From Tubulanus polymorphus (lineage: Eukaryota > Animalia > Nemertea): a stretch of DNA of 64,000 bases. The stretch is taken from contig NC_134031.1 of NCBI RefSeq assembly GCF_964204645.1, positions 2,542,001 through 2,606,000 on the forward strand. Reading direction: 5' to 3'. Positions 25,201-56,682 of this stretch are shown here, one piece after another. Numbering within the stretch: the first letter of the stretch is position 1; each line of letters starts with the position of its first letter. The position numbers and the translations under genes are program-made. Under the pieces are notes generated by a model. That model was not told the origin of the DNA. It did not search any database and saw nothing but the letters and a program-made list of their open reading frames with translations.

Positions 25201-28200
25201 TTGTCGTATCCGGGATGAGTAAATGATAAATGGATGAAAACATGGGAGCTAATTTCATTTATATGAAAAATTGCACCATGTAAAAATTGACGAACTTCTT
25301 CGGAAAAAAATTCCTTAATCTTTTGGATCTATTTTTATAAGGTGTCTCCCAGGTTTTTATATATGGTATTGAAGACTGGCAAAATGTTTCGTTCTTTTTA
25401 ATACTGATTCAATGCTCTTCGTATTATAGCAATGCGTATTTTTCAGCAAGCAATAAAACTGAAAAATGATAATGAATGCGCTATATGGTGTTTATTGGTA
25501 ATTACATACGTGTCAGGGTTGGCTTCGTCTAAGTAGCAACTTAGTATTAGCAAACATTATGATGCGAGTTGATGAAGTAGAACTTATTATCAATTAATGC
25601 GTGTTATTCAACCGAGAACCGAGTATAGAAGGAATTAATGAAAAACATTCTTGAAATTTTCCCAGCGCGAAAAAATGAATACCGAATAAATATTACATCC
25701 GTCCATAAACTAACAGCCGAACGAAGACAATAGAGTTTTGTTGAGATGCAGCTTTTCAACGTAAAAAAGGCAGTATTTATTGTTTTATTGCTTTCAAAAG
25801 AATTTTCCTGTTCGTAACTAATGATTGGGCGTTGAAGTACTCGACAAATCAGTGGCATTCATCAAAGCATAACCAGTATGACGGAATGCTGGTGCTTAAA
25901 AACCCGATTTCAAATTGTTGCCAATCGTTCGCCAGTTGCCAACGAAAATCCAATATCGCATATACATGTATGATTTTACATTAAAAAGTAAACAACAGCG
26001 GTTACGGCGTATCTATTTTCATAGGTGTCAGAAATATTCCAGTAGTCGGCTAGAAACGGTGTCATTGAACGTCATTATATCGGGAAATATCAACGTGCAG
26101 TTGTTCTAAGCTAAAGTTAGCTTTACCGTTCTTAAAAATGACACTCACAACACTCCTTATACAGCACCAGTTAACGGCATCAATCGGATACACGCGCTCG
26201 ATGGCTTTCTATTTACCGGATTAACTCCTTGAAAACTCCATCGAGAAGCGGTCCAAATAGAGACCTAGTTGAAACGAAAAATAGCTTCGTAACAACGACA
26301 TATGAAATGAAAAAATGAACGATGTTAAATGGTTCCTGGACTGAGTGAAATAGAACTACGTTATAAAACCACATTATAACCCCGTTCACGACTGTTCTAT
26401 CCGTTCACATCGCGTTACGTAGAACGTTCTAATCCCGTTCCTATCAGGAACGAACGAAGCGTTCATTCTAGTAAAAAGTTTGATCCTCCTTGGTCCATGC
26501 AATTTAAGATTGGACCAGGCAAAACCGGAACGACAAAAATACCGATCCAGGTCTATTCTGAATTTTAGAACGGTCCACTTAGTGTGTGAATAGAAACTTT
26601 GTTTTAATTTTGTGTTTTGTGTTTGTAACTGGACCACTGATTACAGCAGATTTAAAAGCATGTGTTTTGAACGCGCAGCCATGATTTCGTCTGATCCAAG
26701 TACAAGCCAAATTAGAATTCTCTAACTAATCGTCAACGCGGATTATGTCAACTCTTGACAGTTAAATATCGTAAGACTGTAAAACTGGGTCCTGAGTGAC
26801 GTTATCGCTGCAGTTCTAGCGGCACACGTTGATCACGTGTTACTGTCAGTGACCGACAGCGCGTTGTTACACAATCATTATTCGATCGGTCGCACCGGCA
26901 ATAGAGCTCCATATTTAGTACTTCCCGTTCCGTAAAACTTCCTCGCCGAAGTTTTTTCCACTCCAATCTTCACTAAACACGCACAATATTCACGCCGAAT
27001 CCGCTGAACGTTATTACGATTTACATCATTTATTGTGCTGCTGTCGTTTGAGTTATGAACCAGTGCGTTGATGGAGTACACGAAGTCGATGAAATATTCA
27101 AAGGACAAATGACCTTGTATGTGGATTTATCTAAAGGCTCCGGCGAGACCTGGTGTATCTATAGGTGGTTGTAAATATAGATTTTTAATTTTTTAGGCGT
27201 CAAACTACAATTCTGAGGTATGTTATGTTTCCAAAGTGATCATGAAATGATGAATATATACAAAGCTTTAAAATTGTCAAATTTCTAGATTTTATAGAAT
27301 CAACTAATCGAAAACTAAATGATTTTTGAAAGCTAAATCTAGCGAATACTATTACTGATATTTATCTTTCATTTTGACAGCAGGAGAACATTTAGAGAAT
27401 CACTTATTTCATTGTTTAAGAAAATTCACCTCGAACCTTATGTAATTTTTTACGCGTAAAAAGGCGACGTCAAACATGAAGAAATTGCGTAAATAATCCA
27501 TTTCGTTGGCAATTACAATTACGCTATAATTTTCTGGGAGAAATTGATTACGTTTAATAAGGATGACGCTTGAAGTTGATTGTTTGCTTCGGGTAACAAT
27601 TTTTAACGTGTTTTCGACGTTGAAATCACGTCAGAAATGACCTATCTTTTCTTAATATTCTGTCTCATCTTCTCTATCTGCCTCGAGACTCTCGACATCT
27701 TGTCGTCACTCACAAATGTTCGCCATATTTCGCACTGTTTTCGGTCATGACGACGTGGCAATTCAAGTTCATCGCGGTCGGACAAGAACCTGCCGGCTTC
27801 AGTATGGATGCAAATCACAAGGATTTACATTCATCATAACTTAACCGATTCTTCTATCAAACCGAATAGATGAGCTGGTCATTTTGTATAAGTCCTAATT
27901 TCTTAAACTGGCTTTTTCATAAGGACCAATTCGAAAGCGGCCCAAATTGGAAACATATCTCCATATTAGGGATCAAAATAGTTATAATAGTTATAAATAA
28001 GTTATAATCTTTTAGAACCGCTGAACAGAGCACCGTGTAACAGGTGAACGACTTCGTTTTATATGTAAATGCTAAAAGAATATCCGTCGGAAAGAAGTGT
28101 CGAACAACGTTTGTCTAATATCTATTGACGATTATCCAAATAAGACAACAGACACTAGGATCAATAGCAATTAGACTTGCGAACACTCCAATTAATAGAT

Positions 28201-31130: not shown

Positions 31131-33636
31131 ATGCCGCAATGTCCTCGCTGTTGGTATCAACTGCTGACTATAATAGCTATGATAAAAGCTGTCATTGCCA
31201 GGCTCATCTTCGCCATTCATTCTTTCATAGCGGTTTGGCGTTTGGCTGATGTTAAAAACAACCCCGTCTATTGGTGCTTGGCTTTGACTTTGTTTCTACT
31301 TGCGGCTGAATGCGCTTTCACTTTATGGAAGAAACAGGGCGCCGAGTGGAAATGGTAAGCTGTCTGATAAATTCAAGCATACGCCACTCAGTTCCAGTGA
31401 GTTGAGAGTCCGAGTTAAAATTGAATTAGTTCATTTTCAAATACATATTTTTATACCATCAAATGCGGAGTATATTGCTAATTCCTGATTTGACTTCGCT
31501 ATCATCTACATTAGACGTTCATAACGGATTCTAACGGCTAAGTTATATATGCGGCCCATTGAGACTGATTGACTGTTCTTCAGATGACACTAAATCCCCA
31601 CTAGAACTGTTTACTAAATGTGTAGGAGATACTTCTCATATTGCTCTCATTTAATCCGGCACCAATTGTAGCATATTCTCAGTCCATTGACAGCGACGAA
31701 TATCCATATTTTGTCCGTTACTACTAACTACGTATATCACGCCGATATTTTCCAACTGTCGGTAATTCGTGTCTTAAAGTCAAATGTTATTCTAGTCTTG
31801 TTTCCAATACACCTAGGCATCGATCGAACCTTTACCACCCCGTCTTATAGGGTTATTTAATTTCGTGAGAAATGTTCATCAATTACCGCCATATCCCCGC
31901 AACAAAAACATCCGCCGAGTACTTCCGGCGTTATATGTGACGTCATTGCAGAGCAAAGTGGTAAACGGTGTTCCGAATGCCAGCGTCACTAGTGAGTGAA
32001 ACATCATAACATCTTATAGAGGAGGTTGGCCGATGGTTTAAGTAGACTGGTTATGAATAATTGCTTATTAAGTGCTTTGACAATCCTTATTCTCCTACTC
32101 AGTTTTTCCTATTCTTTTCATTGCAGGTTTTCGCCAGTGGTATTTTTCTATTTATGCAGTGTGGTACCGGCTATTTGGTTTCTAGAGCTGGACCTACTGT
32201 TCAAACGGCTGGAAAAGATTAAATTAGCCAAAGAAGGCATCGTCTTCAACTTCACAGAAAACACCGCCGAAGCATTGTCCATGATCCGAGGATTTGGCGG
32301 AGTAAGTTGCTCGAAATATGCGGAATGACTCTATTGGCCCAACACAGGAAAGATTTGTGTATATGTCTAGACCAAACGATCGGACACTCGTGATACGGTC
32401 AAACCATTTGAACACATCACCGACGATGTTTACTGTCGGAGCAATGGTCACCCTTGATATGTTTTAGACCATGGACGCATAAACTTGCATTCTCAAGTTC
32501 ATACGTCCATGTTCTGAGCAATAGTGCGTCTTCACTATCGGACTCATTGCCTTCCACTCATGACAATGGGAACAGGGCAATCGTCGGGCAACTGGTCAAC
32601 TATCAGCAATTATAGCTCAATTTTTCTTGTTCTCTAATGCATTTTCTCTTTGTAGGTTTATATTCCAATTATGATGACCGCTGATGAGTGGGCGAAAATT
32701 CTTGAACAACTCTTACTTCTATTTCTCATTATCGGTCGCTGGCTTTTACCGAAAGGCGACATAACACGTGACCAATTATCCCAGCTCCTACTGGTCAACA
32801 TAGGAATGGCGGCGGATATAATCGAGTTGTTCGAAGCGTTCAGAGAGGATCAAGTAAAATATAATTACACATTGACGGTAGCGATCTTGTCGTTATGGAC
32901 GGGAAGTTTGTGCCAGTTTACGTTAGTCGTAACGGCGACGAAAGCTCGTAAACCACGCGTAGCCATCGCGCAGAAGAAGGACCTAACGGTGACCTGCTTC
33001 TGTTGCGAAACAGAAATCTGGGCGATCATGACCAGTATAATGTTACAGGACGGACCGTTCCTCGTGTTGCGAATGTTATTGATTTTCCGTTACGAGGTAG
33101 TTAGTTATATGAACGTGTTCTTCACGTGCAAGAACACGTTGGTGATGTTGTTACAGTTGTACCGCATCGCTGTCGTCATTCTCGAACGACAGGTGGCGCG
33201 GAAAAAAGACGACGAGACGGAAACGATTAGCATGAGCATGTCACGATCTCAAAGCGGAATTTCTCGTATATCACGTTTCTCCAACAACAGACCGGATAGA
33301 ATTACGAAATCGCGCTCGTTCGGCGGTTTAGTGCAGAATAAGTCGCAAAACAATATAGACCATTCGTCGTATCCATGTCTAAATAGCAAATCTGCCGGTG
33401 ATCTGACGGTCATGCATGACAACTACTACCCTAGACCCACGCTAAAACCCAAATACCCGAAACACAAACGCTTGCTTTCAAATTCCAGCCATTTGCGCAC
33501 AACCGGTGGGAGTAATTCCAGTGTGAATACGACGAAACAAACTAATGATACCGATATGAAAAATGATGACAGCGATAGGTTGCCATTAGCCCGACACGAG
33601 ACATTCGAGCAGTCACTTGAAGATAGTATTGTATGA
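31131..33636 (+). CDS. TMEM26: Transmembrane protein 26, 459 aa (477 aa with the candidate 7947 exon)
   Basis: Exons 31131(31126)-31354, 32127-32301 and 32656-33636 join in frame via GT-AG sites. Family motifs: ARLIFAIHS, EWKWFSP, VPAIWFLEL, LIIGRWLLPKGDITRDQLSQLLLVNIGMAADIIE, QDGPFL..R, FFTCKN. Ser-rich C-terminal tail. AATAAA at 33643 and 34023. Confidence 0.93.
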
Positions 33637-37200: not shown

Positions 37201-40200
37201 GAATATCGGTAGAATTCCTTGTATTCATGACGTTCGCCAAATTTTTGTCGACGATTTCATGATTGTTTTCATCGGTTAAACCATTTAAGATGTTCTCTAG
37301 GTCTCTAGGAGAAACTGTCGAATGCGACTCATCTTGTTCAGCACGCGTGGTTCCTGTAATAACTTCGGGCCTCTCCTTTTCATCGTCTATCACAATGGTA
37401 AAGGTTTCAGGGGTATTGTAATCGATTAAAGAAATGTGTCCACTTTCAGGACTATCTTCGGTTTCCGAATTGTGTACGATATCATCATCCCCGTAATAAT
37501 TTAGTTTATTTACAAGTTCTTGTTTCGGAGAGCTGGATTGGAGATCATCAATGTAATCATCTGCTTTTGTTTCCGAAACATTTGATGATGTTTTGGAATT
37601 ACTTTTGTTGTCACTTGTTCCAGTAGGTTTAGTGGAAGTGAAAGTGGTTTGAGTTGGTTGATGCGTAGTTTGTCTAATGTCAATTGACTGAGGCGGTAGT
37701 ACTTCCATATTATCGACGGCATCTGGAAATTCAGTCCAGAGTATTCCTTGGCTAAGATTAATATCCTCAACAGTTTGCGAAACGGTAGCAGGAACATCTA
37801 GATTGTACGTTATTGAATAATATGAGTCATCTAATGAATTTACGGCCAAGTTAACCTTTGGAGACTCATCACCCTTGATGGTAAAAATCTCGCCACCAGA
37901 ACCAGAATGTGAATTTGTCGGTGTGTTGATATTGGGATAGCTTATTTCTTCTTCCAAATCATTGCGACTTTCAGTATGTGACACTAAAAAGAAAATACCA
38001 TATCTTATTCAATCATTCACCTATTTACAAAGAGTCTTTGATTCCATGGAAACTTTCAAGTGTTACCCCATTCACACGACGGACCATCGTAACCATCAGA
38101 GCACTGGCAGACAGGTCCTCCTTTCTCATCGACGTAGCACTCTCCGCCGTTTTCACAATGGACGGTCAAACAAACATCTGTATTTACATATGTAGAGTTA
38201 GCGACAGAACGAATACAACATCTAGGAATGTTACGAAAACGTTTATATATTTTCATGTAAAGAGGACTATTATTTGCACATATACCACATTCGGATAATG
38301 CTCGACAAGCATTCGCTTTGAAGATAAACCCGCGGTTACATTCACAACCAGGTGTTGACGGTAAATCACACTCCTTTTTGTTAACTGCACGCTCCGTGCA
38401 AGATGGCTGACATCCTGACATCCTTTTGTTAAACGTGCTATTTTCTGGACACTGCATTCCTGTAAGGACCACGTACATTAAAATAAACACTTAACAGTAT
38501 GTTGTATCTCACTAGGATCTATTACACGTACCACATCGCCGAGAAGTTCTCCACAGACCTATTTCGTAGCCGGCTGCTTCACATTTAGACTCTGCCCCTT
38601 CTAAAGCCCCGCATACCATTTGCATGTCCCCGTTCGTTACAGCTGCATCGAAAAGACAGTCGTCGTAATTTCCCTTGATTAATGAGGTAGAAATACAAGA
38701 AGCGAATGGACCAGTCGAGTTCGTTAATAAGCCGCAGAATTCATCTGATTTGTAACTGACATCATTTATCGAGCCCATTTGAATTAGATCGGCGGCATAA
38801 CTGAAAGGTGTGTAAAGTAGTTCATGTACCATAGTGAATATTGTCAAAGAGTATTGACGCTACCTCATTCCACACTTACTAAGTTATCTCGTGGGTATCA
38901 CGCCTTTTTCTAGTTTTAGATTCAACGTTTGTGCATCTGAAAATGTTCGCCATACATACATAAAATGCTAATTTTTAACGAATAAAGAATGAAGCAAATG
39001 TATATTCTGGATTGCTGTTGAATTCTTCGACTTACGATCCTCTTTCGTGACACTTCCCTTCATCAAGACATTGTAGGAAATTGTCATCATATGCGTTATT
39101 GTTACAATTCCCACATAAACCAGTTAGACTTCCATTGTAACTATTGGTCTGAGAATGATTATCTATAATGACTAAAATGCGATAGTTAGTCTGAATGGAA
39201 ACTGTGACTCCACAGCTGACGATTCTTGCATGCACCACTGAACCACTAGTAACTACTGAGATTCCTCCAGCCGTTAGAGGGGCAGTCCACCTTACGCCAT
39301 TTACCTGTAAATATTTGAATTGGAGATTTCAGCTATTAGATCAGCGTTGTGAGAATGCCAAGAAGGATCAAGTAGACTCTACAATAGTGGGAATTACCAG
39401 AATATGTCTTTTCTCATCAATGGCAACGACATAGCCGTCTAATTCGATTTGTACTTCAGAAATATATGATCCAGCGATTCCACTTTTTACGGGCGAGTGA
39501 ATACTTGTGATACGAAATGCACACGATCCGTACGTATTGCCAGCATATTCAGTCAGTATATATCGGCATAAGCTGCCTTGAAAGTCGAACCTCTTTCCAT
39601 CAAAACTTGTGAAATGGGGGTCACCATTTATAAGGCATTGGCCCGAACACGAATTGGCTGCAATTCACATCAAATGGAAATTGAAGATACAAAATATGAA
39701 AGGGAAAATATTGATAAGTTCATCAATTACGCATCTTACCCAAACTATCAGAAATAGGATCAATTCCAGTGACATTAGTTCTTGTAGTAACAGAATCCAT
39801 ATCATTTGAGTGGTTTGTCGAAATCGTAAGAGTTAAGGCAACACTGCTTGTGCTATTCGCGACATTCCGTCCAGACCCTTCCGGTCCTGCGTCGGTTGAG
39901 TTAGAATTATTTGAGATCGTATTCGAGCCATAATCATACGTGGTGTGGCTGTTTTCATCCTCCAAAATGAGAGTTGTTATCTGGTCCATATTTTTGTAAG
40001 TATCATCCAGGGCCAAATAGGTTTCCTGGTCTGAAACTTCATAATCAGTAGAGGAATGATTATCCTGATATTCCATTTCATACTCGCCGGAGTTTGGTAG
40101 TGGTTTTGTATCTTGCTTTGAAAACCCACTAAAATCGCCATAACCAGTTGAGCTTGATGTCGGTTTCTGTGGTTCTTCTAATTCAATATTCGTAGGCTTT

Positions 40201-42481
40201 CTATCAGAATCACCAGAGTTTGGTTCTTCTAATTCAATATTCGCAGGCTTTTTATCAGAATCACCAGAGTTTGGTTCTTCTAATTCAATATCCGTAGGCT
40301 TTCTATCAGAATCACCAGAGTTTGGTTCTTCTAATTCAATATTCGCAGGCTTTTTATCAGAATCACCAGAGTTTGGTTCTTCTAATTCAATATCCGTAGG
40401 CTTTCTATCAGAATCACCAGAGTTTGGTTCTTCTATTTTAATATTTGTTGGATTTCCATCAGAATCACCAGAGTTTGGTTCTTCTACTTCAATATTCGCA
40501 GGCTCTCTATCAGAATCACCAGAGTTTTGTTCTTCTAATTCAATATTCGTAGGCTCTCTATCAGAATTACCAGAGTTTGGTTCTTCTAATTCGATATTCG
40601 TAGGCGCTCTATCAGAATCACCAGAGTTTGGTTCTTCTATTTTAATATTTGTTGGATTTCCATCAGAATCACCAGAGTTTGGTTCTTCTACTTCAATATT
40701 CGCAGGCTCTCTATCAGAATCACCAGAGTTTTGTTCTTCTAATTCAATATTCGTAGGCTCTCTATCAGAATTACCAGAGTTTGGTTCTTCTAATTCGATA
40801 TTCGTAGGCGCTCTATCAGAATCACCAGAGTTTGGTCGTTCTAATTCGATATTCGTAGGCGCTCTATCAGAATCACCAGAGTTTGGTTCTTCTAATTCAA
40901 TATTCGTAGGCGCTCTATCAGAATCACCAGAGTTTGGTCGTTCTAATGCGATATTCGTAGGCTCTCTATCAGAATCACCAGAGTTTGGTCGTTCTAATTC
41001 GATATTCGTAGGCGCTCTATCAGAATCACCATAGTTTGGTCGTTCTAATTCAATATCCGTAGGCTTTCTATCAGAATCACCAGAGTTTGGTTCGCCTAAT
41101 TCAATATCCGTTGGATTTCTATCAGAATCATCATAGTTTGGCTGCGTTTTAGCATTGGCCTTGGTTTGCTTTGAATCATTAGTTGAAGTTTCTAAATCAC
41201 CACCCCCACCGATTATCTGGGCTGTACTAAAATCATAAACATCAGTAGCGATATGAACGTTTTTATCAGAAAAAAAACCTGGGGTAGTTGGATTATGGTT
41301 TTTGCTAGATTTCATGGTTGGAACTGCTTCTCCGATGCTTTCATCACTACGAAATAGACTGGCAGTTGTAACCGTTTTTGGGATTGAATTATCATTATCA
41401 TTGTATTTTCGGTGCAAAGTTCCCACGTTCAATTGTGTTGGTAATTCAGCAGAAATATCAGTTGGATTACCATTTCCCGGTTCATCATCATTAAAAGTGT
41501 CTTCGTAAACAGGCGATGATTCTGATTTCCCATTTACTAACGTCTGTAACATTCTGATAATCGAAGCGGAGTCACTGCGATCAACATCCTTTTCTTCCTT
41601 GTTCTTAGGATTATCCTCTTTTTTTGTTAAATACTCGCCAAATCCATCGTCAAGATATTCTGATAAAAGTTTTTCCAATAGCTGTAAAAGTCGACTATTA
41701 TTCACGCAGTTCTGATCATGTGCATTAGTATCCGGGTGATTGTTTCTTAAATGCTTAGAAATTGACAGCTTCGTCATGGCTGCTTTTGAGGCCAGGTCAT
41801 AACTACCTGACGTCCGCGGGAATGTTGGTTCTTCTTCGTATGTGACATCTGAACCAAGTCCACGTAGGACCATATTTGATCTGTCGTCGTCAATGCCGAG
41901 TCCACTTGAACCCGAGGCATGAGTGGTATCAATCGACATGTCGCTGTTCGCATTGAGACCGCTGAACATCTGGACATTACCACCCTCACTACTTTCCTTC
42001 GTGATTTGATGGATCGGGTTGGCTACAGAGGTGTAATATATCGAACTCTGTTTACCTACGCGCGGGTTGTAATCAATATGCGAAACACCGTCAGTCAAAG
42101 GGGGCGCAGCATCATCAGTGTCAGTTTGTAAATTGACATCATTCAAGTCACCAGAACCAATAGTTATCTTAGTGAAATCATCTTGTCCTTTTAACACTTT
42201 GTCTTTCGCATTAATTCCAATTTCAATTTCCCGATTGATATCACCAGAAGTAACGTCATCTGCAGGAATTTCATCATTTGTATCAAATTTCTGTATCCAA
42301 AATTTTGTATCGCCACTGCCACTCCCATCGTTATTCAAATTAAAGTCATCAATAGCTCCATGTTTCACTATTTTTTGCGGCGAAATCGATTCATTATCGG
42401 TTCCAGGATCAAACACTGTTCGTTTGAAATCGTCTATTTCAGTATCATCGCTGCCATCGCCGGAGAATTCTAACCAAACGT
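34271..42481 (-). CDS. Mucin/zonadhesin-like module: acidic Ser-Gly repeat region, VWD-C8-TIL-EGF, Thr/Ser-rich tail (C-terminal part of the large secreted locus)
   Basis: Exons (minus) 42481-39740, 39657-39398, 39304-39036, 38936-38880, 38800-38532, 38459-38286, 38177-38067 and 37983-34271 join with consistent phases. VWD: CLINGDPHFTSFDGKRFDFQG..GLCGNCNNN. C8: CGLL..GPFASC..YDDCLFD. TIL: CPENSTF..CQPSC..GCEC. EGF: CENGGEC..CQCSDGYDGPSCE. The first exon starts at a phase-1 acceptor and has no signal peptide. Confidence 0.82.
36615..37036 (-). repeat. Coding tandem repeat, 78 bp (26 aa HQSSTTKPVTTSLRTSTATDEKTSAT), ~5.4 copies
   Basis: Seen in DNA and in the 1237-aa ORF translation. PTS mucin-type composition. 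Confidence 0.9.
40171..41143 (-). repeat. Coding minisatellite, 51 bp (17 aa EPNSGDSDRxPTNIELE), 19 copies
   Basis: Period of 51 nt read directly (TCAGAATCACC at 40204, 40255 and onward). Nineteen units counted in the translation. Confidence 0.95.
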
Positions 42482-43351: not shown

Positions 43352-46300
43352 TTAAGTTTTCTTATCATGCTTCGCCTTTGCCCCTCTGCTGTCCAACACT
43401 GGCTCGTTGCTATCAGTAGATGACCGAGTGATTGTACCGTTCTGTGCATCCGATTCATTACTTATCTCAGTGTCGCTATCGTGTATGATTTTCTCTTTGA
43501 AAAATTCAACATTCGTAGGCTCACCACCATTGATCCTGTCGACTTTGATGGCAAATATATCCGTTTCGTTCAGTTGAACATCGGCAATCTGTCCACTATA
43601 ATTCAGTTCATCGTTTTCAGAATCGTTTTTGCCACTGTGAACTGCGAATGCAGTAGTTGTAACAATCTGCTTCATGGTCGCGTTGTCATTTTCCACCTCA
43701 TTTACTTCGACAAACGTACTTGCATCTGTGAGTTGGTCACTTTCTTCTTCCGTGACCTGGATGGATTTTGAATGAACGGCTTCATTTGTTGCTTTGGCCA
43801 GTTTTTTAGGATCTTTCTGCTTTTTGTGATTTCTGCTTCCACTTTTCTTCTTCTTTCCGGGGTTCTTCTGTCTTTTGTTATGATTTTTAGCAACCTTATG
43901 TGGTTTCACTTTCTTACCAGAAAAACTAGCGTTCTCGATCTCTTGATCATGTACTGTATCATTTACAATCACTGAGTCAGATACCTCTAGCTCTTTGTCC
44001 TTAACTTCATCTAACGTTGTGGTATTATGGTTACCAGTTATATGATCACCACTGTTCGGAGCATTATCAAAACCAGCCGGCGGTACACAAGTACATGTCT
44101 CACAACTTAAGCTGTCCATCATGTGCCCATATTCGCAATGTTCATCGCAGTCAAGTTCTTCAATGCTTTTACAGGCAACTTCAACGAGTTCTTTGCATAT
44201 ACAAGAATCGCACCCGTGTTTGTCCTTAAATGAACCGTTTGGACAGGGGCCGCTGTCGCAATGAAGATCAGCGCATGGAACAGGTGGCAACTTAGGTCTT
44301 AAGCATTCGCAAGTCTCACATCCGTTTTCATCTCTTTCAGAACCGTGAAGGCAAGGTCCATCCCAACAGTTCAGGTCTAATTTACAACCTTTACAAAAAC
44401 ATGTGGGACAACCGTCCGAGTCAAGTTCATAGTCGTTTTGACAAGCATATTGGCAGTTATATTTCGGACAAAAACCGCTATTTTTATTAACTGGTGGCGG
44501 TACTATAATTCCATCAATGACAGGTGGCTGCAACACATCTGAGCACTGACAAATCACGCAGCCGTATTGATTATGTTCAAACCCTGTATCGCAGTCCAGT
44601 TTACAGGTGTCAATCGATTCACAAATGAATTCTGGAGGTGACCTACATCTGCAGGTTTCACAGCCAGATCTGTCAAGGAACGATCCATGAATACACGGTC
44701 CCTGGTCACAATGCAAGCTAGGACAAAGATCACTAGGAATCTCTGGTCGTTTACATTCGCACGTTTCGCAACCATTTTCATCTTGTATCGAACCATAAAG
44801 ACAGGGGCCATCCCAACATTTGTAGTCAGTACATGCACACTCGCAAGTAAGACAATAATTATTATCGTGTGCGTATCCATTGGTACATGTTCTGTTACAC
44901 TTTAGCATGGGACATTCATTGATACAATTACACGTTTCACAACCATTTCCATCGCTTTGGTAGCCGTTTTTACAAACACTCGGGCATGTATGCTTTTGGC
45001 AAATCTTCTCTACCACTCCCGTGCAGTTACAAGTTTCACAGCCATATTCATCTTTAACGCGCTCAAGAGGGCAGCTATTTCCACATTGTAGATCTGCGCA
45101 TTTGTGTTCTTCTGCGTTACATTCGCATTTACTACATCCAAAACGATCGACGACATAACCACGAAGACATGCACGAATACATTGAAGAGCGGGGCATTCG
45201 TGGTTCCCACTCGAGATTTTGCAAGCACACATTGGACAACCTGCGCTGTCAGTAGTGAAACCATAAGGGCATCTTTTGTTGCAGTCCTTTGTTGGTGGAC
45301 AGTTACTACCAGGTGCTCTAAGGCACGAACATGTCTCACAGCCGTTTACGTCCAAATTTGAACCGTGCAAGCAAGGGCCATCTGGACAGTGAACTGTTGG
45401 GCAAATGCACTCGCATGTTTTACAGCCCTCATTGTCAACCTGATTTCCTAATTCACACTTCTTTGTACATTCTGGTAATGTTGGACAACTCACGGACGTT
45501 GCGTTTCGACAGAGGCATATTTCACATCCGTACATGTCAACCTGATAACCAGTACTACAGGATTTGTAGCATTTGTTGATTTTCGATGTATCACAGATGA
45601 CCTCAGGTGGTTGCTGACATTCACACGTAGGACAACCTCGTTTGTCGTGTTTTGAGCCGTATTTGCACGGCTCCTTCTGGTAGCACCGATGGCTTGGACA
45701 TGTTTCCATCTCACCTGAAAAAGAAAAAAAGGGAAAAAATAACATCATGCATGACATTGTTCACGTTTTCCATTAATTTTTCCACTTCAATCTTTTCCCA
45801 GTGTTTTTAGCTAAGTAATCAGAATTTTTCACCTTTAACAATTGTTTGATTATTTTCTGTAAGTTCTGCTAGTTTGCTACTATTGTTGTTTTCTTGTGAA
45901 AATATCGCATGCGATTCAACGTGAAGATGTGCTTTTGTAGACAAAGCATCGTTGTGTTTAGAACTCTTGGACTTTTTAGCGTTATGGTGCCGCCGTCTTC
46001 TTATTTTTCTTCGCCGTCTTCGGGGCCGTTTTCTAGGTCTTCGATGGTAGCTTCGGCGGCGATGTCGCTTTTGTTTTGTATGACGACCATCGTTTTTCTT
46101 GCTAAGTTTGTTTTTGTTATTGTGGAGGTTAGCGTTAGTACTGTTTGAAATATTGATAGCAATTTCTGAAAAATGGATTTTCAAAACGTGTGAAATAAAA
46201 TTCCTTTCTAAAGACTTCTAGAGTTTCTTTGAGTATTTTTCATATTACCGTGGATTCAATGGTTTTGCCAAAATATCAGATAATTTATCAATAAGAAAAG

Positions 46301-49300
46301 GTAGATATGGCATATGTGATGTATTTTCATGAAAAACAGTACTTTTTTGAAAAAGCTTATTTACCGCTTTGCTCGATACATGCACAAACTGGGCAACCGA
46401 ATTCGCTGCGAAACCCACTATCACATCCCAAGTCACAATCCTGAATCGATGGACACGTTCTGTGGCATCCTGATTGATGTTTTTGTTTTTAAGAAAAAGA
46501 TAAGTACTGGCTATCAAAATTACAACGTTTCTGATCATCCAGAATAAACATTTATGGCTTGTGGTCATATGTACGTAGGTTTTAAGTTTGGCTTTTCGTA
46601 TAACTTGTTGGAATGTGCGGAATGAATGTTTGTGATTAGTACATACCTTCGTTTAGTCCGTAATCGGGCATTAGACAAGTGCAGGTCATGCAGCCGGTGA
46701 ATGCGGAGAATGCAAAACCAAGCGGGCAGTAATTCGGACAACGATACCGGCATTCATCATCTAATGTAAATATGTCATGCAGGTCATAACTACATGCGGT
46801 TAACAAGCTAAACAATTACATCAAACCTTGGAATATATAAAACGATTGATGGTCCATTGTCAAACTAAACTACATGAACTGGTATTGGATTAATGTTGCG
46901 TCTATCATGAACAAGCCCCACTCACTCTGCCTCTCTACTCCTTCAAACTCGATACCGATTAAGTCGATAAAACGCTTGCCTAGGTTAATGTTTTCTGTTC
47001 ATTGGCATTCCTCGGCCTTTTTTAGTCTAGATCCGAAAAAGTTTGATGGAATGCTACCCTGTCAGTTTTCTGACAAGGTAGTAAAAAAGCACTATCACTA
47101 TTCAATCTTGTCCTAAAGTCGTGGGCTACATTTTATATATCGGAAATGGTCTACTTTGAGTAAAAGGAATCCAGATGATGACAGAAGAAAGGTGAAATCC
47201 AGAGGAAATGAAAATAAGATTAAGACGTCAGTTTCCCGAGTGTGTGCATGAGTTTATTGAAGTGCACGGGGTGCATGCAGTACATTAGAATCAATAACAC
47301 AAGGCATTGATAAGGATAGAAAGGTTTCATATCATACAATAAATAATCGTCTTTAAAGTAAAAACAAGTTCATTTAATCACAGTTATATCACAACAGATA
47401 CGATATCTTTAAAAGTATCAAATCACATGCCAACTGAAGAAGTGACAGTCCTACTTCAGAATTGTCGTCTGCCAAAGTTCACCATGCAAACTCATGCGTT
47501 TCGATTATAAACTGTTAAGTAATTACCGTTGGTCTGTCTTGCTATTCCTGGCCAATTACATTCACAGATAGCGCAACCTCGCTCGTCCAGTCGGTTTCCG
47601 TAAGGGCAGTACATATAACACACCGGACCACATGGTTTACCTGAATAACGATGATATTTCATTTGATTGCAATAAATAGAGGGGTAACGTCCCGAGAATT
47701 GTGCAATCCGTACTAACCGTCGCTGCCAATGATTGGCGGAGAGAATTGCGCTAATTCTTTTGGCTGCAAAATGAAGAAATTCAAATAATGCCCTAGCCAA
47801 ATAAAGGGTTTAAACATTCAGAAATTAACTTTGATATATTTCTTTACGTTTACTTAGTAAAATTCACAAATGAAATAGATGCGAATGATAAGATTTCCTA
47901 ATATTGTTTATTAGTTTGTTTTATTAAGTATGGAATAAGTTAAGTTACCGTTCGTTTTTTCCTTTTGGAGTTGATTACGCTCAGACAGCTGCGATCGTGT
48001 GGAATGTCCACCAATTCCGTAGGATTCACGCAGTAATCGCCAGTCATTTTAGCCTTCATCTCGTTCATCTTGGTCGCGTCGATTGTTTTGTCTCGGCACA
48101 TGAGAACGACAAGTTCACCTCCTCGGGCACAAACACCCGCACTTATACTCGAATAACACTCGTAAGTGATAATGCAATCAAAATCCGCATACACTATCTT
48201 TAAATCGCCTGAAATTACGAAAAGAAAAAAGTTTTAAAAAGTATAAATTGGCCTAATCATATAAATCTTCCTCAAAGCTATGTTGTTAAGCAATGCAATT
48301 GTAATTTGGTTGAATATGCATTCCAATCTGTGCTGAATGAAAAGTCCCACACCAAAATCTACGAATAACAGTTTTCATTCAACCAGCAGCTGTTGGCTAA
48401 AAGCCACCATCAAGGGAAATGTTCATCGCTAGTTTTCCAGATCCAGATTTCCTGCGCAAAAACTCACCTCGAGTTGGAGTGCCACGCATAACGACAGTCA
48501 TGTGACCTGGAGCGTCACCTACCGGGTTCAAGTGTAATGACAGGGGTCCCAAACACTTCCCTTTCCTGAAACGATACAAGTCATTTCTCGATACTCATAA
48601 CTTTGAAAACTAACCTTCTTTTAATCATTTGGTTAACAATGAGTGACAATAGCGGGTTCGAGTCCTGCTGCCTGCTTACAGCGTACGGACAAGAACGTTG
48701 TCATAGATGACGTTAGGGGAGGTGTCTCATTCTATGACACCGTCTCCTCGTGAAGTTAGTCTTGGAAAACCAACATCCGAACCTCGTAAAGCAAGATATT
48801 TAAACAAATATATATATTTTGTAAACGAATACTTTGAATATGTAATACCTGATGAAGCTGTAAGAAACTTGAATGGAGCCATCGCGACGCATTGCCAGAT
48901 TTGATACACTGGCATCCCATGTAAGTCCACGCCACAGACCGTGAGTTCGACTAATCACGTACCAAGTTCCCATAAGCTGAAAGATATATATATAAATATG
49001 GCTATGATAGTTAAACACTTCGATTTGAATTCCCACCATACTGAAAATATTGCTCTGGATACGAGAACGATATCAAAACTAATACGAATTCATTATTAGA
49101 AATATGATTTATGGCCCCCGTGTGCCGCAATAGGTGGCAGGGTTCATAGCAAGTTGAGTTCATTTTTTTGCAGAAGACGCTTAAGCTCGGAACGCGAGGT
49201 TCAGATAAAAGTAACGCTCTTTTTACGCTCTTCATCCGCGCGATTATTGAGATGTACAGGTGGTTCGAGGTATTCTGACGTCATCATTGTGCGAACACCG

Positions 49301-50782
49301 CAAGCAGCTGGAAACGAGCCCCGACTTCACGCAAAAGCTAGAGCTAATAAACGTACCGTACCCACAATTATTAGATTACCTAGCGAAAGGAGATTCGTGG
49401 TGAAAATCGTACCCTGCGATGGCCACAAAAACAGACACTTTGTGGCAAATAGAAAACTATTTTCATTGGAATTAGATCTTTTTATTGTATCGCAGTATAT
49501 TCGAAAAGAGGACCCCCCCTTCCACCTCCAAATTCTCTGGTATACAAATTGCTTAAAACGAAAATGAATTTATACACTATATTCTCTATTTGTGAAAAAG
49601 AGAGAATAATACAGAATCTAATCATACAGTGATTATCTCAGTTCTGTAGGGTATCAATCAATATCAGTGTCATTCACTAAAAAGGCTAGTCATCCGATAA
49701 ATGCCTATCTTCAGGTCGTCCTCACACCACAGTTCATATTGCCGGTCAATCGATAAGTTTTGTTCAGCCATTTCGTAAAAGGTCGAGTGAAATGACCGGA
49801 TACAAAAGGCCTAGGGTTGATAAGCCAGCCAGAAACACCCCCGCAATATTAGCCCCCCATTGTTGAATCTTGGAGTAATCCGAATGATTGACGACGAATA
49901 TATGAAGATTGAATATATGAAGCAAATCAACAATGATATTCATATTATCTTATTGTTTGCAGTTGCGCGAGCGTCGGATGGGTTCAAGTTTGGCGAAGTT
50001 CGTTATCCATTCTGGTAAAAATTGAAAAATCGGTGATTTCATTCATGTGAGAAAATACTGTTAAAACATACTCCAATATATTCAATACAAATATTATGCA
50101 CCAATATTGATACCTTTATCATCATAATGTCGAACTATAAGCTATTAATGATGATGACTCCTTCATTGAGAAAATTGATTGCAACATTGATTGCAATGTA
50201 AGTAAATATGTAGTTATTCCTGACCTGAAAGTTTATAGTTTCTGCGGGAGTTTGGAGTGACGTAATGAGCCTAATAGCATAGCAGCGTGGTATTTACTGT
50301 TTTGGGGCTCAAACGTGACTTACTGGTCACGTATCCCGACGTTCGAACAATGGTAAATCATGACCAAATTCCCTTTTAACTCAATTCGCTATTATTTTTA
50401 AAAATGAAAAACTCATTCCAGTATCTATTAGATCATCATAATATGAGATCAAGAACTTATCATTTTGACCATCGCTTCATTCAAATTCCTGATTTCTTAG
50501 AATACCTTTTTCAAATTGACCAATGCGAAGAGGTACTAATTTCGGATATAATAAGTTGAGCCAAATTTTATCATTGGACAGAAAATCTTTTCTGAAATGT
50601 TTTTGTAAGATTCGATTAGGAAATAAAGTAATACAAACCGATTCCGTGTTGATTTCACGTTGCGGAACAACATCTCTCGGTGGACAGTCGGTAGATCTCT
50701 TGTGTAACGGATGCGCCCGAATCACCGATTCGCTGATAAGTCCAACGAAAACAAACATAAAAACATATCTAATAGTAGCCAT
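43352..50782 (-). CDS. Secreted lipocalin + 19 antistasin-like repeat protein, 1234 aa (N-terminal part or short isoform of the large locus)
   Basis: Exons (minus) 50782-50639, 48976-48849, 48565-48468, 48208-47949, 47763-47718, 47640-47527, 46760-46647, 46469-46365, 46165-45833 and 45714-43352 join in frame (3705 nt). Signal peptide MATIRYVFMFVFVGLISESVIRA. Lipocalin motifs INTESLMGTWYVISR, IVYADFD, VLMCRD. Six-Cys C..C...C..G...D..GC..C.C repeats (antistasin). TATATA at 50830-50835. Confidence 0.82.
48629..48670 (+). mobile_element. tRNA-derived SINE remnant in an intron
   Basis: TGGTTAA A-box-like sequence and AGCGG-GTTCGAGT-CCTGCT T-arm/B box. The rest is not tRNA-like. Confidence 0.3.
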
Positions 50783-54239: not shown

Positions 54240-56682
54240 ATGGCATCAACTAAGACAGGTAATAGACTTGAATATTCAATTCGGTTGAATCTAACTGTAA
54301 CATTATTCTCAGTTCTGGTAGGCCTACCAGGAAGTTAGCACATATACTGTGGTAGATTAATTGTTTGAACATTTCTTGTAGAAACGCTCCTCTGTAAATG
54401 CGGAGACAAGTGTCAATGTTGCGACGGATGTAAGGGTGGAAAATGTGGCTGCGGTGATGATTGTAAATGTTGTGACAGATGTAAAGATAGCAGTAAATGT
54501 TGCTGCGACGAAGGATGCAAGGGCTGCGTTGATGGATGTAAATGTTGCGACGGCTGCAAAGGAGGAAAATGTGGTTGCGGAGACGATTGTAAATGTTGCT
54601 GCGGTTGCTGCAAATCCGAAGGTAAATAAATATTTCTTTTATGTAAATTCATTTTTCATTACAATGAACGTAGACTTCATTCGTTTGAATATTATCCGAA
54701 AATGGAATCATAGGTTTAGAAATACCAGGGAGACATTTTGCTTTGGAAAATGATTTCCATCAATTCTATATATGCATTAGTGGTGTATAACATTTTTTTT
54801 TCGAAGGTGCCGCAGCAAAATCGTCCTGCAAGTGCGGAGACAAGTGTCAATGTTGCGACGGATGTAAGGGTGGAAAATGTGGCTGCGGTGACGATTGCAA
54901 ATGTTGTGACAGATGTAAAGATAGCAGTAAATGTTGCTGCGACGAAGGATGCAAGGGCTGCGTTGATGGATGTAAATGTTGCGACGGCTGCAAAGGAGGA
55001 AAATGTGGTTGCGGAGACGATTGTAAATGCTGTTGCGGTTGCTGCAAATCCGAAGGTAAATTTCTTCTATTTTTTGAATATACATTTTTTAATTTTGGAT
55101 TTAATGAACGTTGACTACATCCGTATTCGTTTGAATGTCATTCGAGGTAAACTGAATAATATGTGTTGTATTTTTTCAGGTGCCACCGCAAAAACGGCCT
55201 GTAAATGCGGAGACAAGTGTCAATGTTGCGACGGTTGTAAGGGTGGAAAATGTGGCTGCGGTGATGATTGTAAATGCTGTGATAGATGTAAAGTAGATGG
55301 CAGTAAATGTTGCTGCGACGAAGGATGCAAGGGCTGCGTTGATGGATGTAAATGTTGCGACGGCTGCAAAGGAGGAAAATGTGGTTGCGGAGACGATTGC
55401 AAATGCTGTTGTGGTTGCTGCAAATCCGAAGGTAGAATTTGCTTTACTCGAACTTATGTTGTTTTTTTTAAATTAACTTTCGCTCAATTCAGTTCAATGT
55501 ATATTCAATATATGAGAATCAGTTTTCAAAATGACTTTGGGTATGAATAACTAAACCAACAAACTTTTTTCTCCCGATTAAGTTTGGTCTTAAACACATA
55601 AAACATACTCTTATAATGAGACATACTGAATAATACATTTTGTTTTGTTTTTCAGGTGCCGCAGCAAAATCGTCCTGCAAGTGCGGAGACAAGTGTCAAT
55701 GTTGCGACGGATGTAAGGGTGGAAAATGTGGCTGCGGTGATGATTGTAAATGTTGTGACAGATGTAAAGTAGATGGCAGTAAATGTTGCTGCGACGAAGG
55801 ATGCAAGGGCTGCGTTGATGGATGTAAATGTTGCGACGGCTGCAAAGGAGGAAAATGTGATTGCGGAGACGATTGTAAATGCTGTTGTGGTTGCTGCAAA
55901 TCCGAAGGTAAATTTCTTCTATTTTTTAAATATACATTTTTTTCATTTTGGATTTAAAGAACGTTGACTACATCTGTATTCGTTTGAATGTCATTCGAGG
56001 TAAACTGAATAATATGTGTTGTGTTTTTTCAGGTGCCACCGCAAAAACGGCCTGTAAATGCGGAGACAAGTGTCAATGTTGCGACGGATGTAAGGGTGGA
56101 AAATGTGGCTGCGGTGATGATTGTAAATGCTGTGACAGATGCAAAGATAGCAGTAAATGTTGCTGCGACGAAGGATGCAAGGGCTGCGTTGATGGATGTA
56201 AATGTTGCGACGGCTGCAAAGGAGGGAAATGTGGTTGCGGAGACTATTGCAAATGCTGTTGTGGTTGCTGCAAATCCGAAGGTAGAGTTTGCTTTACTCG
56301 AACTTATGTTTTTTTTTTTTTAAATTAACTTTCGCTCAATTCATTTCAATGTATATTCAATATACGAGAATCAGTTTTCAAAATGACTTTGTATCAATTA
56401 CTAATCCAACAAACTTTTTTCTCCCGATTAAGTTTGGTCTTAAACACATAAAACATACTCTTATAATGAGACATACTGAATAATACATTTTGTTTTTGTT
56501 TTTCAGGTGCCGCAGCAAAATCATCCTGCAAGTGCGGAGACAAGTGTCAATGTTGCGACGGATGTAAGGGTGGAAAATGTGGCTGCGGTGAGGATTGTAA
56601 ATGCTGTGACAGATGTAAAGGAGATGGCAGTAAATGTTGCTGTACTGACGGAAGCAAAGGCTGTGGCAGCAAGTGTTGCTGA
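54240..56682 (+). CDS. Giant multi-module metallothionein-like protein, 478 aa, 163 Cys (34%)
   Basis: Exons 54240-54258, 54382-54621, 54807-55055, 55180-55431, 55656-55907, 56033-56281 and 56507-56682, all GT-AG and phase 1, total 1437 nt ending in TGA. CxC/CC/CCC motifs, rich in Lys/Gly/Asp. No His, Phe or Trp, one Tyr, no signal peptide. MREs upstream and AATAAA at 56860-56865. Confidence 0.88.

Follow-up and report, generated by a model that had tools for sequence, protein, structure and literature searches.

We analysed a window of 64,000 nucleotides from the genome of Tubulanus polymorphus, a palaeonemertean ribbon worm (contig NC_134031.1, positions 2,542,001 to 2,606,000 of the forward strand), which has a guanine-plus-cytosine content of ~38% and genes with introns. 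On its minus strand lie nine exons (e1 to e9, Table 1) which, read in order, encode a signal peptide, a lipocalin, a short linker, 19 antistasin-like units and a charged tail. An earlier note on this DNA had described a signal peptide, a lipocalin spread over four exons, three antistasin units in single exons and 16 more in one exon, and each of these parts was found on the minus strand where it had been placed.

Table 1. Exons and candidate processing signals of the lipocalin-antistasin locus. Positions are those of the 64,000-nucleotide window; the strand is that of the feature; Cys-free, without cysteine.
Feature	Position	Strand	Content	Evidence
e1	50782-50639	-	ATG, signal peptide, first mature residues including the STDCPPRDVVPQREINTES stretch, first conserved Cys (STDC)	
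e2	48976-48849	-	lipocalin from strand A on; LMGTWYVISR, with the G-x-W motif (MGTWY)	
e3	48565-48468	-	middle barrel strands; conserved Cys (KGKC)	
e4	48208-47949	-	strands F-H, helix, last strand; IVYADFDCIITYEC (YADFD), YEC, VLMCRD, DYC, RSC; ends in KRKKR and T	
Start of intron 4	47948-47907	-	if unspliced, stop two codons on (TAA 47942-47940); AATAAA at 47925 and 47912	
e5	47763-47718	-	15-residue Cys-free linker PKELAQFSPPIIGSD	also in XP_074655452.1
e6	47640-47527	-	antistasin unit 1, phase 1-1	Pfam PF02822 and six-Cys pattern
e7	46760-46647	-	antistasin unit 2, phase 1-1	six-Cys pattern, splice sites; Pfam under cut-off
e8	46469-46365	-	antistasin unit 3, phase 1-1, seven Cys	six-Cys pattern, splice sites; without Pfam match
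Candidate cassette exon	46165-45833	-	111 codons, phase 1-1, Cys-free, Arg/Lys-rich, many R-x-R-R sites	
e9, first part	45714-44087	-	antistasin units 4-19 in a single open frame	
e9, second part	44086-43352	-	244-residue Cys-free tail rich in K, N, D, S and E, then stop	
Phase-1 donor candidates in e9 tail	43918, 43525	-		
Phase-1 acceptor candidate	42481	-	opens the next same-strand frame, with acidic 17-residue repeats	

The introns are of the GT-AG type throughout and the phases chain without a stop, being 0, 2, 1 and 0 in the lipocalin and then 1-1 for each module exon; the 1-1 phase of these later exons is the pattern expected of shuffled modules. By coordinate arithmetic the spliced coding sequence measures 3372 nt (1123 amino acids, aa), or 3705 nt (1234 aa) when the candidate cassette exon is counted in. 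That exon, absent from the model of the earlier note, is an open frame with canonical acceptor and donor for which a Pfam search returned no family; we give it an even chance of being a real, perhaps alternative, exon.

Searches were run exon by exon, and the RefSeq predicted protein XP_074655452.1 (LOC141909023, uncharacterized, 274 aa) stood for the spliced e1-e6 product in the tests of fold and family. This protein splices e1 to e6 exactly as modelled here, including the junctions 47949 to 47763 to 47640 that had been proposed beforehand. Its residues 1-48 are identical to e1, whose signal peptide has the hydrophobic core YVFMFVFVGLI and a likely cleavage site after SVIRA, and it holds the lipocalin and the first antistasin unit in one polypeptide; the public gene model thus links the two domain types on one chain, as had been claimed.

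The N-terminal part is an RBP4/ApoD-like lipocalin with three RBP-type disulfide positions. When single exons were searched, the Pfam family Lipocalin_2 matched e2 only (E 0.028), and phmmer against the PDB gave a lipocalin family protein as the best match of e2 (E 1.3) and no match for e4. Searched with phmmer against 1.8 billion representative sequences, e4 matched multi-lipocalin proteins at 1.7e-11 to 1.5e-5, which came from sea urchin, Owenia, Haliotis, Nucella, Batillaria and Gigantopelta, in addition to XP_074655452.1 itself; the best match (1.7e-11) is a sea-urchin multi-lipocalin protein that itself scores 3.4e-53 on Lipocalin_2. Residues 24-215 of XP_074655452.1 were then aligned with 39 domains taken from the e4 matches. 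Six columns of this family alignment are invariant (C10, G28, C72, C118, C127 and C160), W30 is nearly so (at least 90%), as is D109, and the consensus includes KVxYTDY...LSR; the corresponding lipocalin motifs of the Tubulanus protein are MGTWY (G-x-W), YADFD (T-D-Y-like) and LMCRD, with the strand-H Arg.

A profile made from the family alignment matched RBP4 (5.9e-23), ApoD (7.2e-18) and AMBP (3.7e-9), and the positions of the RBP disulfides align. The AlphaFold2 model of the same residues, computed with this alignment, reached a predicted local distance difference test (pLDDT) score of 85.1 and a predicted template modelling score of 0.82, and displays eight strands (28-138), a helix (145-158) and a last strand. 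Foldseek comparison of the model with the PDB returned lipocalins for all the top matches (L-PGDS, RBP, ApoD and C8-gamma, with template modelling scores of 0.67-0.81), and fold searches of the ESM Atlas returned lipocalins only. The ApoD/RBP-like lipocalin of the earlier note, for which an eight-stranded barrel had been anticipated, is therefore borne out by profile, model and fold search alike. In the 268-Mb Tubulanus genome the family profile detected e2 (1.9e-5) and e4 (3.8e-17), and lipocalins of this type are essentially confined to the locus; a search of the genome with the PF08212 profile did not flag the locus, and no paralogue of e4 was found in the genome. The likeness to RBP and ApoD suggests that the putative hydrophobic ligand may be of the retinoid, carotenoid, bilin or lipid type.

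Among the relatives of this domain, multi-lipocalin giants of marine annelids and molluscs carry up to ~25 RBP-like lipocalin domains, to which the molluscs add VWA and Ig domains; examples are proteins of Owenia fusiformis (5687 aa) and Haliotis asinina (3267 aa).

The second half of the locus belongs, as judged from Pfam, cysteine pattern and alignment to leech antistasin, to the antistasin domain family. Pfam Antistasin (PF02822, family cut-off 21.2 bits) matched e9 over 15 stretches with 215 bits (8.8e-65) and e6 with 29 bits (1.4e-6, or 4.7e-6 within XP_074655452.1); e7 taken alone scored 16.3 bits (E 0.015), which is under the cut-off, and the open reading frame of e8 gave no match, its unit being recognised by the six-Cys pattern only. 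A scan for the six-Cys motif located 16 units, with 96 Cys, in e9 and a further three in e6, e7 and e8, one per exon, so that the array comprises 19 units. The same scan gave false positives in a Cys-rich, metallothionein-like gene at 54393-56527 on the plus strand. Pairwise identity between units spans 25-75%, and the four units 9-12 recur as a duplicated block in units 13-16, with 75% identity between units 10 and 14. With identities this low and every one of the 114 expected Cys (19 x 6) kept, the array is old and its cysteines have been conserved; the same observation rules out a chance open frame or a pseudogene. The array aligns to leech antistasin (PDB 1SKZ) at E 2.6e-4, and the C-R-V-H-C loop of that protein falls on the C-x3-C loop of the unit.

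Several further antistasin arrays are present elsewhere in the Tubulanus genome. On contig C1 (23675800-23696350) two of them face each other, with ~13 and ~17 matches and one unit per short exon every ~300 bp, in contrast to the 16 units that share one exon at this locus.

The combination of both domain types was also found in other animals. In the sea urchin Strongylocentrotus purpuratus, isoforms X1-X3 of LOC584238 (XP_030853517 and isoforms) match Lipocalin_2 at 6.4e-53 with six domains, Antistasin at 8.3e-8 and Thyroglobulin_1 at 8.2e-13. The 33-aa antistasin unit, which has Lys at P1, is flanked by the lipocalin array and the thyroglobulin-1 domain, and isoform X4 lacks exactly these 33 residues, which points to an alternatively spliced cassette exon. 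Rotifer proteins of ~885 aa (Brachionus, Rotaria, Adineta and Didymodactylos) match Pfam Antistasin and Thyroglobulin_1, and their N-terminal 200 residues, blank in Pfam, align by hhalign to the family alignment with a probability of 97.6% (E 4.2e-12), which marks them as a cryptic lipocalin; the model of this region from one of them is of low confidence (pLDDT 51), and its fold search, which returns only lipocalins, adds little to the hhalign result. In JGI contig L001, whose source organism resembles Brachionus (E 8e-13 to P0024), one exon encodes a signal peptide and the next the G-x-W motif; a single uninterrupted open reading frame then contains the remainder of the lipocalin, a mucin-like region and six antistasin units. 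The two introns of this contig match introns 1 and 2 of the Tubulanus gene in position and phase. In a tree of 36 lipocalin domains the Tubulanus domain falls on a long branch whose placement is without support.

A six-frame scan of the window for thyroglobulin-1 yielded one CWC[VIL] match, at 25887 on the plus strand, in a stop-interrupted frame and without thyroglobulin-1 context, and Pfam searches of the open reading frames downstream of the locus did not find the domain. The Tubulanus protein is a member of a small, rare group of lipocalin-antistasin proteins that is visible in databases and undescribed. The earlier note had not recognised this architecture as described, and no paper joining lipocalin and antistasin in one protein was found in the literature searched; with sea-urchin and rotifer relatives in the databases, the protein is nevertheless less singular than that note held.

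We read the locus as one secreted modular gene, composed of signal peptide, lipocalin, furin-type site, linker, 19 units and charged Cys-free tail, a reading that we place slightly on the probable side. Its precursor would very probably enter the secretory pathway. At the end of the lipocalin exon, on the domain border, stands KRKKR, the only R-x-K/R-R sequence of XP_074655452.1, and along this stretch, which is flexible in the AlphaFold2 model, the confidence drops to 50-68. A proprotein convertase might cut after KRKKR, as in AMBP, which could equally well occur or not in our estimation; the cut would give equal amounts of a ~20-kDa ligand carrier and of a long, disulfide-knotted antistasin chain. 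With a little more reserve, we propose that this chain may act as a multi-headed protease inhibitor or decoy in mucus or matrix, mainly with non-trypsin specificities (Tyr, Trp, Ile or Thr at P1), several of its units probably being inert spacers.

Several observations weigh against this reading, and they touch the lipocalin, the continuity of the chain, its cleavage and its activity. Compared alone with Lipocalin_2, XP_074655452.1 covers 130 of the 146 positions and scores 16.5 bits (E 0.008), below the cut-off of 24 bits. As to continuity, RefSeq splits the locus: XP_074655452.1 reads past the e6 donor into intron 6 and then stops, e9 has a separate database model of 727 aa, and e7, e8 and the candidate basic exon are in neither model. 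No database protein spanning e6-e9 was found, and word searches for transcript-derived fragments returned XP_074655452.1 itself only when that protein was the query and nothing for e4. Moreover, if e4 is not spliced at its donor the frame meets a stop two codons on and two AATAAA signals within 40 nt, which makes an mRNA for the lipocalin alone plausible; across the window AATAAA occurs at a density of ~0.93 per kb per strand.

These data could be read as a locus that mainly yields a stand-alone lipocalin, through retention of intron 4, the stop at 47940 and polyadenylation near 47900, and/or the 274-aa RefSeq form; the 16-unit exon would then belong to another transcript, whose first exon has escaped recognition. 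We regard this as improbable. The 727-aa model begins at an internal Met within an antistasin disulfide unit and has no signal peptide, and a start inside a disulfide unit is not a natural N-terminus. On the minus strand upstream of the array e1 is the sole signal peptide, and between e4 and e9 no other exon with a Met, a hydrophobic stretch and a phase-1 donor was found. Exons e7 and e8 are intact six-Cys units whose canonical phase 1-1 sites fit both neighbours, and in the relatives both domain types share one open reading frame. From splice phase and the want of a second signal peptide we infer the joins from e6 to e9, and consider it likely that at least one isoform carries the lipocalin with the whole array; short isoforms are quite possible besides, and the public annotation of the locus appears to be split and truncated.

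The cleavage step meets a difficulty of its own, as an R-x-K/R-R site at the domain border occurs in the Tubulanus protein only; the sea-urchin and rotifer relatives lack it, and cleavage is therefore not a conserved feature of the group. The activity of the chain is the other point at issue. P1 positions were mapped through the alignment to 1SKZ on the basis of Arg34, which we take to be the P1 residue of antistasin, and for units 1 to 19 they read Y, P, D, Y, Y, T, P, N, I, G, P, N, W, D, K, Q, W, D and D. A basic residue is present in just one of the 19 (a Lys; Arg in none) and Pro in three, which weakens the inhibitor reading and makes classic trypsin-type inhibition doubtful; in addition, five of the 19 loops are non-canonical (four C-x4-C and one C-x5-C). 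Membership of the functional trypsin/factor-Xa inhibitor group is accordingly not supported by the loop residues. The earlier note had called on antistasins as serine-protease inhibitors: the family assignment stands on Pfam, cysteine pattern and 1SKZ, while the inhibitor role has become uncertain with one basic P1 and five odd loops.

With such a P1 spectrum, a structural role is a serious rival to inhibition. The antistasin chain may be a spacer of beads-on-a-string form, rigid and resistant to proteases, in mucus, tube or matrix, for which the lipocalin would serve as functional or anchoring head, an explanation that falls somewhat short of an even chance in our view. Besides the P1 residues and the five loops of altered spacing, it is favoured by the occurrence of antistasin-like units in non-inhibitor contexts, for example in proteins annotated CRIM1-like, and by the many further arrays in the Tubulanus genome. 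However, canonical inhibitors accept many P1 residues, and Tyr, Trp, Ile and Thr suit targets of the chymotrypsin or elastase type; the sea-urchin unit, moreover, has its Lys at P1. Small antistasin-like proteins are also contained in the mucus and proboscis proteomes of nemerteans, where they have been interpreted as inhibitors that might block the digestion of predators (PMC10674772, PMC12846013).

The proposed gene ends at the stop codon of e9, past which no AATAAA was found within 360 nt. The phase of the acceptor candidate at 42481 fits both donor candidates of the tail, so a longer isoform is possible. In its extreme form, 43918 or 43525 would be spliced to 42481 and the transcript would run through the acidic repeats, C8-TIL-EGF exons and a Thr/Ser-rich mucin exon to 34271, making a giant mucus protein headed by the lipocalin-antistasin part. 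Phase-compatible sites, the lacking AATAAA, same-strand downstream open frames with C8 (1.7e-12), TIL (2.5e-6), EGF and long repeat exons, and a rotifer relative that likewise mixes mucin-like and antistasin regions all agree with it. Nevertheless, the splice sites are candidates that the phases permit, the database model of e9 finishes at the stop codon, what lies downstream may be a mucin gene in its own right, and the sea-urchin and rotifer relatives end in thyroglobulin-1, not in VWD-type modules. We hold the longer gene to be unlikely.

The downstream region has features of its own. Within a minus-strand open reading frame (39723-42416), a 51-bp tandem repeat present 19 times (40170-41141) encodes acidic 17-aa units, PNSGDSDRxPTNIELEE, whose Ser-Gly dipeptides are possible glycosaminoglycan attachment sites. 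Between 34271 and 38847 on the same strand, the C8, TIL and EGF exons precede a mucin-like, Thr/Ser-rich exon of 1237 aa with repeats of 78 bp (5.4 copies) and 378 bp (2.1 copies); this stretch is a neighbouring mucin gene or else the distal part of the lipocalin-antistasin gene. Facing the mucin-like exon is a TMEM26-family gene on the plus strand (31131-33636; Pfam Tmem26 7e-64 on the last exon).

To our knowledge AMBP has long been seen as an oddity, and we know of no explanation of why a lipocalin and a protease inhibitor share its precursor. An invertebrate gene built on the AMBP plan from an unrelated inhibitor fold offers an independent test case, as do the sea-urchin and rotifer relatives, and with these genes it can be examined whether co-secreting or tethering the two activities serves a function. 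A broader view, which we put forward as speculation with rather low confidence, is that RBP/ApoD-like lipocalins have been covalently coupled to inhibitor-type modules in several animal lineages: echinoderms and rotifers would have used antistasin together with thyroglobulin-1, nemerteans antistasin, and vertebrates Kunitz domains. Tubulanus would have arrived independently at the complete AMBP arrangement, in which furin cleaves a polyprotein, and its inhibitor array would be the largest known among precursors of this kind. If true, this would point to an old, unexplained functional partnership of ligand carriers with protease control. The analysis also brings out that marine invertebrates possess a family of lipocalin domains of the RBP-like kind, with up to ~25 of them in one protein; this family was not covered in the literature searched.

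Among known systems, the one that the earlier note had named as analogous, AMBP, is an apt comparison. The Tubulanus protein shares with it a signal peptide, an N-terminal lipocalin, an R-x-K/R-R site at the domain border (in Tubulanus exactly at the end of the lipocalin exon) and tandem inhibitor-type modules in one precursor. Unlike AMBP, its modules are antistasin-like instead of Kunitz and number 19 instead of 2, its lipocalin is nearer to RBP4 and ApoD than to alpha-1-microglobulin, and its cleavage is predicted only. A Pfam search of the array for Kunitz domains returned Antistasin only, and without Kunitz domains the protein is an analogue of AMBP and not a member of its group. Since the inhibitor fold is antistasin and not Kunitz, the fusion is independent of that of AMBP, in agreement with the independent origin that had been proposed.

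The sea-urchin LOC584238 and rotifer proteins resemble the Tubulanus protein in having a homologous RBP-like lipocalin and a Pfam-significant antistasin in one polypeptide and an antistasin unit as symmetric cassette exon, and the rotifer contig does so in two intron positions and their phases as well. They differ in composition: the sea-urchin protein combines six lipocalins with one antistasin and one thyroglobulin-1 domain, and in the rotifer proteins a single lipocalin and a mucin-like linker are joined by three to six antistasin units and three thyroglobulin-1 domains, whereas Tubulanus has 19 antistasin units and a furin site, with no thyroglobulin-1 found in the window.

With the antistasins of Hydra and leech and with hirustasin (MEROPS I15), the units share the Cys spacing of the reactive-loop subdomain, as seen in the alignment to 1SKZ. 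Like the Tubulanus array, Hydra antistasin has multiple internal repeats, of 25-36 aa (PMC7851590). Leech antistasins have full domains with ten Cys, whereas the Tubulanus units correspond to the reactive-loop subdomain only, of the Hydra type. The characterised inhibitors have Arg or Lys at P1, unlike 18 of the 19 units here, and the Tubulanus array is far longer than those of Hydra and leech and is fused to a lipocalin. Lastly, the polycalins: a search of the literature on them returned proteins of Lepidoptera (moth midgut) only, and the closest sequence relatives of the Tubulanus lipocalin are domains of the multi-lipocalin giants of Owenia, Haliotis, Nucella, Batillaria and sea urchin, from which the Tubulanus gene differs in having a single lipocalin domain.

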